Of a stretch of DNA of 64,000 nucleotides, positions 48,131 to 57,300 are shown piece by piece (the stretch's first letter is position 1; every line of letters starts with the position of its first letter). The translations under genes and the position numbers were made by a program. This stretch comes from Diplonema japonicum (taxonomy: Eukaryota; Protista; Euglenozoa: Diplonemea): assembly GCA_964019335.1 (NCBI GenBank), contig OZ025668.1, positions 248,001 through 312,000 on the forward strand. The letters are read 5' to 3'. The notes beneath the pieces are model-generated. The model was not told where the DNA came from. It saw only the letters and a program-made list of their open reading frames with translations, and did not search any database.

Positions 48131-48315
48131 TCCCCCCAGGGGGTCTTAACGGAAAATAAACTTTTGCAGCCCGATACCCTCCCCTGCTGGATATTAGGAT
48201 TTGGAGTCATATCATCTTGTTCTCGGGGGTTCTGCATTTTCATCAGGGCTTTTAAATCTTCCCCCCCACCCCACCCTCCATTTTTTTTTCTTGTTACAAT
48301 TTGGGGGGATAAAGA

Positions 48316-48567
48316 CGACTATGAAGGGACCTGCATACTTTGATCCCTCTGCCGTGGTAGTTTACTGCCTTAGGTGAACCAACTAGCGAGTTGTTGAGGA
48401 TGCAATGTGCTCAGTTGCTCCACTAGTATCGATACAGTACTGGGTCTGTGATACAACGGCTCTTTGCCGTCACCTCGTGAGCGCGAGCTGGGGCTGATGG
48501 TTCCTTTTATTGGCACGGTCGATACCAATAAAGTACAGAAACTGTAGCTTTAGAATCGTTGGTGGAA
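48316..48567 (-). mobile_element. short SL-headed retroposon-like element
   Basis: SL + hairpin head shared with 57000-57061, 44-codon ATG-less frame ending LHPQQLASWFT*, 3' stem-loop 48323-48349, possible 7-bp TSD ATAAAGA (48309-15 / 48568-74). Confidence 0.65.
48526..48563 (-). other. genomic copy of the spliced-leader exon followed by a GT donor
   Basis: ACCAACGATTCTAAAGCTACAGTTTCTGTACTTTATTG|GTATCG; contains the euglenozoan SL core CAGTTTCTGTACTTTATTG. Confidence 0.92.
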
Positions 48568-54387: not shown

Positions 54388-57300
54388 TCACTGCAGCCGC
54401 GAGCCAATCGTTTTGTGTAATGTAGTAATTTGTGCAGCCCACCTCTGCAAGGCGCGGTACCGTTCTTGACCGGTTGTATTGCACCCAAGGTGCAACATGC
54501 CGTTCACCTGAGAAGTTATTTCTCCCCCCTTTCCCTTTTCCATACCTGATCGATGCCGCCTTCTAAGTCACCGTCTTGAAGCATGGACACCAACAACCCC
54601 TCAACTTCTTCTTCCTCTATGTTCAGATCGTTGGCAAGGTAGGAGAGATGGATGGTGGTGTATGCCTTAGTTTTGAGCTGAAGAACCTTTTTTTTTTTAA
54701 TTTTTCTTTTTTAATTTTTTTTTTTTTTTTTTATAAATCCGTAAAAAAAAAAAATACCTGAGTGCGAACCGTGACCAGCAAAGGTGCGACGTACTTCTTA
54801 ATCAACGGGTCGGAGTCGATATCGCTGTAATAAAAAAATCACAAATTAAAAAAAAAAAAAAAAAAAAAATGGGGCTTTGATTGCAACACTAGGTGGCGTT
54901 AAGCGTGCAATGAAGCACGAACTACCTACTTGATTACAGGGGGCGCTCCTCGGCCGAGTTGTAGCTTCTTCTGCGTTCCGCGTCGTGTCCTTAATGCGTG
55001 CGGTGTGCTCAACCCTAGCCGGTGCGTCCCGGGTAACCAATATTCTGCGCTCGTGCAGTTTGCTGCCTGTTCGTCACCCTGAGCATCTGCGTTACGTTCT
55101 TCCACACTCAGGCGCTACCGGTGATGACCGACGAGGAGGTCAACAGCGAACAACACATCTGATGTACTTCTTTTATTTTCATGTTATCCCCACCACCCGG
55201 AAAAAAAAAAATAAAACTCAAAGTGCAGGACAAACCCCCTCATGGAGGGCCGCCCTTGGGTGGGTTGGGGGGGCTATCTATTTATACTCCCCTTCTGGAG
55301 CATTGCTTTCGTTCCAATCGAGGCCTTGAGCGTCTTGCGGAGTCGCGTGATGCGGTCTCGCTTGTAAGCGGCTTTCAGTTCCATCAGCTTGTCGTGCGTG
55401 GAGTGGGTGGCGAAGATGGGCCTCCTGGCGAAACCCATAGTCGTTTTCCCACCTATTGCGATGAGGGACTTCACTCTCTTCTGTTCATCCGCCGGGAAGG
55501 GGCGTGGCTTCTTCCGTGCTCTGCATGCCGCGTTCAGCTTTCTTATCAGTGCTTTGATCTTGCGAGCCCTATCTTCCAGCAGACCTCCCAGTAACTTGCC
55601 TGTCGTCCATTCGAAGTCGATGGCCAATTCCACCGCTGACACTTCAGAGCTGGTGTCCTCCTTCACCCATCGTAGCTGTGACAACCACTGCAGCAGCGGG
55701 TTCAAGATCCCACTCCTTCGAGCTCCCCCGCCGTCGGCACGAGGCATCTCCTTCCCTCCACATCGCGTACCCACGGCAGCGGCTGTGTGCTGGCGTTGTC
55801 TATTTGCATGAGCTCCACATCCCGTTTCCCGACCACCACAGCCATGTATCGCTGCAGCTTCTCCAGGTGTGCGAAGACATGCCCCCTCGGCAGTATCGCG
55901 TGCAGCTCCAGACATAGGGGCCATCCTGATCTGTTGCGCAACGGCTCCATTCCGTCTAGTGCCAGTTCCTCTTGTGCACAGGCGCACTCATACAGCTGAT
56001 GGCGGAGTAAGGTCACCGTGTCCGGGTGTGGTGACTTGCACAGGTCGCATCTGAATCCTTGCGTGTGCGATACCTCAGTCGTTGGTGCCTGGCCCATGTT
56101 CTCCTCGTCGTCACCGTTGTCGTCACCTTCAGGCGCCAGTGGGACGCTCTTTCGGTTCGCATTTGCGTGCGGGTTTAGGTAGGGAACCCCTCCTGCGATC
56201 ACTCGTCTCAGGCTGTAGGACATGAGCGGGTCCTTGGCCGTCCTCCATAGTCGGTTCGTCTTGGGGTCCGCCCCCGGCTCTATCCCGCTTATCGTGCTCC
56301 TCTCGACCGCCAGCGTCCTACTTCGGGCCTTCCTCACCACCTCTCTAAAGATGTGTCCGCGTTCGGCCCAAGATGTGTTGCAACCTAGTAGCTGCGCCCA
56401 ACTCCATCCTATTCGGGGAAGCCACCGGCAGACCAGGTTGCCAACCGGCCCCATGTGAATGGGCTGCTTCTTGGACTTGGACTCTCCCACGATAGGGGAG
56501 ACGATGAGGGCGCCGCCGTCGGCCGTAATCAGGTGGATGTCGGTCTTCAGTGCGCGGGCGGTGGCTTGGATGGTAACCGGGTCCGCGGCGGTCCCCTCCC
56601 TGGCGTGCTGGGAGCAGTACAAGTCGTAGTCTCCGATGACATTCACCCGGTACTCCTCGCTTCCTCGCAGCTCTTGTATCATGCGACGCCTAACGTCGCT
56701 CCCCTTTCCCGTCTTCTCTCCGACCACTCCGTAGAAGGAGTTTCCGTTTCCAATCCCGTACCCCTTCCCGCGGGCCGTCATCCCGTACCCCTTCAAAGCT
56801 TTGTGAACGTCCATCTTAGACTGACGCGGTTGCTTAGATTGTCAATGTGTTTGCTGTGATCTGATATGATCTGATATGATCTGATATGACTCGATTTTCT
56901 TCTCTTCTCTTCTCTTCTCTTCTCCTTTACGTTGCTGATCTGTGTCGCGCTTCAACTTCCAATATTTGTATTTTCTTTTCAAACCGTTGCTGAGTGATAC
57001 TTTATTGGCACGGTCGGACACCAATAAAGTACAGAAACTGTAGCTTTAGAATCGTTGGTGGAATAAAAAAATAAAAAAACCATACCTTTTATTCTTTTTC
57101 AAAATCGACTCGAAAGTTGTTATGTCCTTCTGCGTGACCGCCTCTATCAGCCCTGTCATTACCTCGATCTCGGGGTCGGTTTTGTAAGGGCTCGCCTCTT
57201 GGCAGTCGAAAGGGTTGATACTGCTTCTGGACATCTAAAAAAAAAAAAAAAAAAATCTTAAAAAAAAAACTTTTCCCATCCATACCATATTTGCCAAAAC

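Follow-up and report, generated by a model that had tools for sequence, protein, structure and literature searches.

In hosts where every mRNA needs a trans-spliced leader, retrotransposon RNA must likewise obtain that leader together with its special cap; the long interspersed nuclear elements (LINEs) of trypanosomatids use the Pr77 module, while the elements considered here carry the leader in their own sequence. These elements are represented by two insertions in a 64,000-nucleotide stretch of the Diplonema japonicum genome (GenBank assembly GCA_964019335.1, contig OZ025668.1, positions 248,001 to 312,000; henceforth the window), both of which open with a DNA copy of the spliced-leader (SL) exon. 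Among Euglenozoa, retrotransposons physically tied to SL sequence are familiar from CRE1, CRE2, SLACS and CZAR, which insert within the exon of SL RNA genes and possess a restriction-like endonuclease. Unlike these, the present elements are dispersed at varied T-rich sites whose flanks are not SL RNA genes, nucleotides (nt) 2-39 of the SL constitute their own 5' end, and in place of a restriction-like endonuclease C-terminal to the reverse transcriptase (RT) they encode an apurinic/apyrimidinic-type (APE) endonuclease N-terminal to it.

Closer in overall design are the ingi/L1Tc elements, together with RIME, NARTc, SIDER and DIRE, which are likewise APE-type LINEs of euglenozoans with a conserved 5' module of ~80-90 nt in both autonomous and deleted copies (PMC8190864; PMC1874656). 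Pr77 of L1Tc/ingi is an internal promoter that yields unspliced, translatable transcripts and binds TBP and SNAP50, which are SL RNA promoter factors (PMC8190864). Two further features are held in common: short derivatives assembled from 5' and 3' ends, which stand to the present elements as RIME stands to ingi, and a 2A-like motif at the N-terminus of the enzyme-encoding open reading frame (ORF). The signature itself differs, being here the SL exon plus a hairpin with an arm complementary to it (anti-SL), in a comparison that takes Pr77 by description only; there are two ORFs instead of one and a T-rich tail instead of poly(A), and neither a hepatitis delta virus-like ribozyme nor any other known RNA family was detected in the head by an Rfam scan of window positions 56780-57100 at E values up to 10. 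No named trypanosomatid protein appeared among the ORF2 matches.

Dinoflagellate retrogenes with relict DinoSL sequences offer a second parallel, in that a DNA-encoded SL sits at the 5' end of a retrocopy (PMC5585692, PMC6050394, PMC7245778), the relicts arising through renewed trans-splicing at an AG within the encoded SL and subsequent re-integration (PMC7245778, PMC5585692). In that system the tagged units are ordinary genes, copied from cellular mRNAs with poly(A), and relicts accumulate, whereas here they are LINEs and an element resembling a short interspersed nuclear element (SINE), all with T-rich tails; relicts are rare (8 of ~215 SL copies), most copies have a single, exact SL, and this is followed by additional conserved sequence. 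U6/L1 and other small nuclear RNA (snRNA)-LINE chimeras also carry a small spliceosomal-type RNA on the 5' side of a LINE cDNA, but they are described as sporadic by-products containing the whole snRNA at variable junctions (bioRxiv 10.1101/2025.02.02.635956), while here the exon alone is present, its junction is constant in 57 copies and the arrangement is a family trait. LINEs with a conserved 5' signature, RIME-type deletion derivatives and SL-tagged retrocopies with relict SLs are already known; a LINE family with an SL exon and anti-SL hairpin as its signature was not found in the literature searched, and the Diplonema papillatum genome paper makes no mention of such an SL-headed design.

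Two related LINE families headed by the SL exon

The 38-mer corresponding to SL nt 2-39 matches the window exactly at two places, 48526-48563 and 57022-57059, both on the minus strand, against none expected by chance (100 shuffles). Each copy is directly preceded by CC and followed by GT(AT|GTC)CGACCGTGCCAATAAA(A|G), and the first-pass annotation was right that both insertions open with the same head. A search of the 62.5-Mb assembly (132 contigs) with up to two mismatches returned 215 matches, while the reversed pattern used as a control returned 0. Family C, to which both window heads belong, accounts for 53-57 dispersed heads, and 30 SL loci were sampled for what follows the SL. A 17-mer core immediately after the SL is exact in 47 copies and carries one mismatch in 10 more, and all 57 have the SL or its 3' part upstream. 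The proposal of dispersed retroelements that have a DNA copy of the SL as their common 5' signature is thereby upheld: the head is not limited to the two window copies, and what lies downstream of it is not a series of random mRNAs but two related LINE families, designated C1 and C2.

As read from 6-kb stretches, the C1 head (GTGTCCGACC...) leads into a 5' untranslated region (UTR) of ~250 nt, an ORF1 of ~740 amino acids (aa) and an ORF2 that opens with the 2A-like GIEPHPGP; in C2, the head (GTATCGACC...) is followed by a 540-aa ORF1 unrelated to that of C1 and by an ORF2 beginning ...GDVHPNPGP. Judged from head-to-3'-end distances, full length is ~6.8 kb for C1 and ~6.2 kb for C2. The full-length copies with endonuclease and RT that the first reading had proposed to look for exist in both families: ORF2 contains an RVT_1 domain at E 1e-19 (locus L071) and 6e-23 (L073) and, N-terminal to it, an Exo_endo_phos domain of the APE type at E 1.5e-9 and 3.9e-10, all above the Pfam cut-off, although the RT has been lost from the window copy. 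The putative 2A-like motif falls within the first 30 residues of ORF2, just ahead of the endonuclease (L071:3566-3660, L073:3098-3190), and the database relatives P0001 and P0003 carry GDIHPNPGP and GDVHPNPGP. The closest relatives of ORF2 are three transcriptome ORFs at 35-46% identity, the remaining matches being partial alignments at no more than 30%. Between C1 and C2, ORF2 is 36.5% identical, whereas the ORF1 products have no detectable similarity; the ORF1 N-terminus gave recurrent OTU/otubain matches at E 0.0013-0.028, below the Pfam cut-off.

Family C thus combines the usual attributes of LINEs, namely RT, APE endonuclease, many 5'-truncated copies with one 3' end, and a 3' tail, although this tail, inherited in part, has its T-rich strand as the sense strand, an unusual orientation. 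Candidate C1 3' ends number 495 (40 of them scored, at 95-100% identity) against ~40 C1 heads, which indicates 5' truncation in the usual LINE pattern. LINE ORFs were not found by tblastn among the 120 environmental stretches listed from a scan with the SL 3' half (mostly SL-tipped transcripts with a few foreign SL RNA genes), and the SL plus anti-SL hairpin had no exact match in marine metagenomes. Altogether, the window insertions are almost certainly dead, internally deleted copies of two related APE-type retrotransposon families without long terminal repeats, in a euglenozoan host with a diplonemid-type SL.

The heads have to be distinguished from the genes for SL RNA. A true SL RNA gene comprises an upstream block ending GGGAGGTTA, a 39-nt exon (AACCAACG...TTTATTG), an intron starting GTACCCAATCTGATCCATGATCAATAAACC, a 3' stem-loop and a T run; such genes form 352-bp tandem pairs adjoining a 5S ribosomal RNA gene (L022:1009-1127 and 1402-1920; contigs C4, C15, C51 and C59). 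Only 9 SL copies are followed by the SL RNA intron, and 6 of these, all SL RNA genes, have the promoter block as well, counts that are subject to a possible collapse of the gene arrays in the assembly; the other 3, L003 among them, are retro-pseudogenes. Some 97% of the SL-exon copies are accordingly not SL RNA genes, and any SL-based prediction of gene starts or SL genes in diplonemid genomes and metagenomes must allow for this. When the exon is read from the promoter-bearing genes, the window heads equal nt 2-39 of the host's own SL with zero differences; the identification of the head as the SL exon was thus correct, while the roughly two internal differences that had been expected are absent. 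The heads have neither GGGAGGTTA upstream nor the sequence GTACCCAATC... that lies downstream of the exon in SL RNA genes, whose T-run terminator comes ~100 nt after the exon, and the 22 nt after the SL, which had been put forward for comparison with the true intron, are not the same as it. A master LINE driven by the SL RNA gene promoter was also considered and rejected, as that promoter was found only at the 6 true genes.

The two window insertions and the host intron

The larger insertion, at 54840-57061 on the minus strand, had been taken for a single element; it is instead a composite of an internally deleted C1 LINE (57061 to ~55201) and a separate, independently inserted 328-bp SINE-like unit, here called unit Y. 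Behind the SL copy, GT and the anti-SL arm (GTGTCCGACCGTGCCAATAAAG) at 57000-57021 are predicted to form a 12-14-bp hairpin with SL nt 29-39, more stable than shuffled sequences (z score -2.9), and the ~90-nt head module common to C1 and C2 ends, by head alignment, with the conserved motif CGGTTTGAAAAGAA at 56973-56986. The remaining 5' UTR, at 56815-56972, contains a GAGAA microsatellite; next comes, at 56455-56814, an N-terminal ORF1 fragment (~aa 1-120) that is weakly OTU-like and, over aa 1-122, shares 95% identity with the L071 ORF1. The LINE segment 57061-56455 is 97.6% identical to the full-length C1 copy L077, and homology resumes ~4.3 kb further on in L077; the window's 370-aa ORF is for this reason read as an in-frame fusion of ORF1 and ORF2. 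Its residues 1-122 are ORF1, the remainder can be aligned with P0001, a 1454-aa relative, from residue 1067 to residue 1285, and a second frame, entered after one frame change, extends that alignment to residue 1413, so that 55274-56454 represents a C-terminal, post-RT remnant of ORF2 with a Cys/His motif. The deletion breakpoint, 56455/56454, is also a break point in contigs of other runs.

The LINE 3' UTR at 55201-55273 ends ...CACTTTGAG with an inherited T-rich tail, T4AT11, and shares its 3' end with the scored C1 candidates; in all, the copy retains 620 nt from the 5' end, the C-terminus of ORF2 and the 3' end. At its T tail stands unit Y, a multi-copy sequence (55197-54870) with a run of 22 T, the whole covering 54848-55197. 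The absence of a sense poly(A) tail, noted from the outset, is borne out, the sense strand being T-rich at this point. The 3' stem-loops that had been pointed out are present as well, but they fold no better than shuffled sequences (z +1.0, -0.9 and -0.1) and were rejected as a signal.

The smaller insertion (48567 to ~48309, minus strand) is a mini deletion derivative that joins the SL and ~30 nt of C2 head to the last ~200 nt of a C2-related element. The C2-type anti-SL arm (GTATCGACCGTGCCAATAAAA) with its GT lies at 48505-48525 and is predicted to fold with the SL at z -3.1; the same head occurs in L034, L038, L050, L073 and others. The body, at 48309-48504, comes from the 3'-terminal region of the LINE and ends ...CCCTTCATAGTCGTC followed by TTTAT; a 55-nt segment of it matches, at 88-89%, sites ~6.1 kb downstream of C2 heads (contigs C72, C83 and C48), and the terminal motif is common to L013 and the L065 flank. 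Candidate target-site duplications are ATTTTTTTATT at 57072-57062 and 54839-54829 for the composite and TCTTTAT around 48316-48567 for the small element, all of them low-complexity and unconvincing, with T runs on both sides.

The composite lies inside a short T-rich intron (57085-54825) and runs in the direction of the host gene, which is on the minus strand. The 5' part of the intron (57062-57085) consists of a GTATGG donor and a T-rich stretch that was the insertion target, and the 3' part (54825-54847) ends, by sequence, with TTATTACAG ahead of an exon at 54758-54824, for which 73 letters remain unlisted in the spliced contig. In X3 record 25, an RNA contig contributed by an independent study, the exon piece ends at 57086 and the exon 57086-57227 is joined to the downstream exons; the insertion-bearing intron is therefore removed from the host mRNA. 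A 38-nt GT-AG intron of the same gene (GTATGG...CTCAG, 54506-54545 on the minus strand) is removed in an X3 RNA contig and present in an X1 DNA contig, and introns of this size make a pre-insertion length of ~60-70 nt at 57085-54825 plausible. Another X3 RNA contig (record 29, depth 13) covers the ORF1 start and the 5' UTR of the LINE. Independent contigs bridging the junction between flank and SL were not found among the Logan contigs, which break at repeats, the best piece entering the SL by 10 nt.

The CC at 57060-57061, between the T-rich flank and the SL copy, is also found at 48564-48565 and 55199-55200 in the window and at L055, L063, L069 and L075-L077. It recurs between the upstream T run and the element start before SL heads of several different subfamilies and before the SL-less unit Y, and may be a target motif or an untemplated addition.

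Copying and possible function of the head

The first ~90 nt of C1 and C2 are ~87% identical, with ~50 nt of this conservation lying past the SL. The shared parts are the SL, GT(G/A)T(C)CGACCGTGCCAATAAAG, 12-13 variable nt and CGGTTTGAAAAGA, with CGTG in the hairpin loop and a GGTTTGAAAAG motif; in a third relative, L012, the stem is kept by two G-U pairs. Directly after the SL, GT is present in 4 of 6 independent SL-headed families but in only 8 of 118 ordinary SL-bearing transcripts from marine metatranscriptomes. An SL-less master with an AG acceptor before GTGTCC or GTATCG was not found among the 57 copies.

The ends of the copies bear the marks of an RNA intermediate. Of 44 unique family C heads, 20 begin at SL nt 2, 6 at nt 3, 2 at nt 1 and one each at nt 4 and nt 17; the other 14 start behind a T run, at about nt 23-28. 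All families are variable in the base at position 1, and the SL RNA retro-pseudogene L003 shares the nt 2 start. The first nucleotide of the kinetoplastid cap-4 is hypermodified, and copies that stop one nucleotide short would fit an RT block at such a residue. In 8 copies, 3 of them among the 57 family C heads, a full SL is followed by a partial second one (its last 16 nt in 7 copies, its last 22 nt in 1) that begins right after one of the only two AGs of the SL, which shows trans-splicing onto the encoded SL and subsequent reverse transcription. Recycling of SL-bearing cDNA in the dinoflagellate manner therefore operates in Euglenozoa too, as a case of parallel evolution. The 20 nt upstream of family C heads are 68% T, against 26% for the background and 34% for family A, a second SL-headed family near contig ends. 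At the other end, the C1 tail T4AT11 is element-encoded, since many copies carry it letter for letter at 99% identity.

Taken together, this anatomy makes it very probable that copies are produced via an SL-bearing RNA template. The template would be element RNA with the SL at its capped 5' end; the RT would copy as far as SL nt 2 and fail at the first nucleotide, presumably at the cap; integration would take place in dA:dT tracts with the T strand as the sense strand; and the A-rich nicked strand would prime on the U-rich, element-encoded tail, in place of poly(A). A side path may account for the rare copies with a second partial SL, if transcripts that read through from upstream are trans-spliced onto the AGs inside the encoded SL. 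It is an evenly balanced question whether, in addition, the head is a heritable and selected part of the element, transcribed as a ready-made leader that dispenses with trans-splicing, in other words SL mimicry. The arguments for such a reused leader are the missing AG acceptor at the junction between SL and body, the rarity of duplicated heads, the conservation of the head past the SL, the missing poly(A) tail, the enrichment of GT after the SL, the transmission of a cut-down head by the subfamily C1b and the precedent of Pr77, to which the head would be functionally analogous if SL mimicry holds. The explanation as a whole, with SL-headed LINEs, RNA-templated copying and a heritable, reused leader, is on balance slightly favoured. 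Among the three mechanisms that the first-pass annotation had offered, SL mimicry or an SL-RNA-like head is likewise favoured, and a chimera of the U6-L1 kind is the weakest, given that SL RNA intron sequence is absent and the junction does not vary.

A more specific version, in which the LINEs impersonate SL RNA, is tentative and has somewhat less than an even chance of being correct. Acting together, the encoded SL with its donor GT, the anti-SL stem and the motif further downstream would recruit SL-RNA-type initiation by RNA polymerase II at SL nt 1; the T tract of the element itself would terminate transcription, and the RNA would gain the SL-specific cap and be translated and copied without trans-splicing. 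Judging from its sequence, the head may serve as a promoter or as a leader. If the impersonation is real, these LINEs would be the first retroelements with the host's universal mRNA leader as an internal 5' module, and it could be asked whether the AlkB-like ORF of the subtelomeric family A acts on cap methylations. More generally, a 5' design that links retrotransposition to trans-splicing provides a natural test system for the role of SL and cap in translation, for the function of a cis-encoded SL and, since copies start at nt 2, for the encounter of RT with a hypermodified cap.

Several observations weigh against a reused, SL-RNA-like leader. The SL RNA promoters known so far are external to the gene, on its upstream side, and the RNA evidence consists of contigs only. 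The encoded SL is identical across families and to the host's current SL, with only ~4 variants among ~54 heads, a uniformity that inheritance would explain less readily than fresh uptake from the host pool in each cycle, barring very strong selection on all 38 nt. Diagnostic SL mutations are carried by L081 (contig C1, 268.4 kb), L082 (C4, 473.7 kb) and L084 (C48, 225.7 kb). Copies of subfamily C1b, which keep just the final 13-16 nt of the SL after a T run, spread nonetheless, so that copying does not strictly require a full SL. In its predicted fold (z -4.1), the real SL RNA leaves its own CAATAAA complement unused, which reduces the SL-RNA-like architecture to sequence logic; the idea that the head copies the structure of SL RNA was dropped on this ground. 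In two family A variants (L027 and the third head of L008), the SL is joined, with a 1-nt G overlap, at points where the known parents have no AG, a junction predicted neither by trans-splicing nor by simple inheritance and pointing to template switching. Internal runs of five or more T on the sense strand of the LINEs are likewise no help, with 0 observed against 0.4-1.0 expected, an uninformative difference; selection against such runs as a sign of T-tract termination was rejected, as the depletion is not significant beyond base composition.

In a passive reading, transcription from upstream runs into the element, and the pre-RNA receives a new SL by trans-splicing in every cycle, as any mRNA does, leaving in the DNA a functionless footprint of the kind seen in dinoflagellate retrogenes. 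The partial second SLs prove that trans-spliced element RNAs have been reverse-transcribed, several unrelated units are SL-headed (families A and C, unit Y and single units), the encoded SL is invariant and equal to that of the host, and T-run flanks followed by AG are good acceptor sites. The passive reading nevertheless appears unlikely, since no acceptor AG precedes GTGTCC or GTATCG in any of the 57 copies and trans-splicing onto canonical copies would yield only the duplicated partial SL that is seen in 3 of 57; nor does it sit well with the ~50 nt conserved past the SL between deeply diverged families, the inherited U-rich tail in place of poly(A), or the enrichment of GT over ordinary mRNAs. 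Fresh uptake could also occur by a jump of the RT from the 5' region of the element RNA to an authentic SL-bearing RNA (SL RNA, free exon or any mRNA), guided by GT/G microhomology, the encoded SL or the anti-SL arm, in the manner of U6-L1 but directed by homology. Such template switching would account for the family A variants, for the junction of the SL with the very first nucleotide of unit Y, where a G overlaps, and for the GT enrichment, the invariant, host-identical SL and the arm complementary to it. As the general origin of the heads it is nonetheless improbable: SL RNA intron sequence is never carried over, the junction is always exon nt 39, unlike a jump to the 3' end of SL RNA, the partial second SLs begin after AG as splicing requires, and 2 nt of microhomology alone cannot specify the site.

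That the heads merely mark ordinary processed pseudogenes of trans-spliced host mRNAs, or chimeras of assembly or cDNA, has a negligible probability. A few single SL-headed units (L006 and L025) do contain ORFs lacking transposon domains, but both window insertions belong to multi-copy LINE families with endonuclease and RT, and the head stands at 57 loci with different flanks. For the two window insertions this reading is refuted by the genome-wide heads, the LINE domains, the copies of the 3' end and the match of the C2 segment. A chimera in particular is very unlikely because the insertion-bearing intron is spliced from the host mRNA in independent RNA data and the same architecture recurs at dozens of loci.

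Other SL-headed units, contig ends and environmental SL RNA genes

Unit Y is present in at least 1,434 candidate copies, the 40 best-scoring of which are full length at 97-100% identity, while most candidates stand at 97-98%. In DNA and RNA contigs alike, no other unit comes near its summed depth. Neither an Rfam family nor a tRNA-like sequence matches it. An SL head is attached to 7 copies, including L001 and L005.

Family A, which starts SL|GTCGT, comprises 106 copies, nearly all within ~10 kb of contig ends and pointing outward, with a 10.66-kb tandem array at 7-46 kb of contig C24. Its first ORF encodes an AlkB-like 2-oxoglutarate-Fe(II) oxygenase domain (E 1e-10 to 4e-14; L009:1610-3037, L015 and L014). 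The few single SL-headed units, such as L006 and L025, occur once each.

Environmental SL RNA genes were encountered in marine metagenome contigs L118, L128, L150 and L151, in which the 3' part of the SL equals the searched 23-mer exactly. The exon starts with AACCAACGATTCTAAA in L118, L150 and L151, as in the Diplonema japonicum genome, and differs in L128 (AACAAACGCTAAAAAA and AACCAACTCAATTAAA); the introns (GTATGGAAACTATCC..., GTACACTAAC...) are unlike the one described here. Hundreds of SL-tipped metatranscriptome contigs were also met in the marine scans.

Contig ends (L004, right end of contig C2; L019, right end of C11; L011, left end of C5; L069, left end of C63) bear long arrays of an 8-mer that was not found in the literature searched. 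The repeat reads CCCGCAAA 5'->3' toward the end, which places the 5' end of the G-rich strand, TTTGCGGG, at the terminus, a polarity opposite to that of the usual telomere. Family A units and, in L069, a C1 LINE, all of them SL-headed, face the contig end and are cut off by the 8-mer repeat, and in L019, L015 and L030 partial SL pieces directly abut it.

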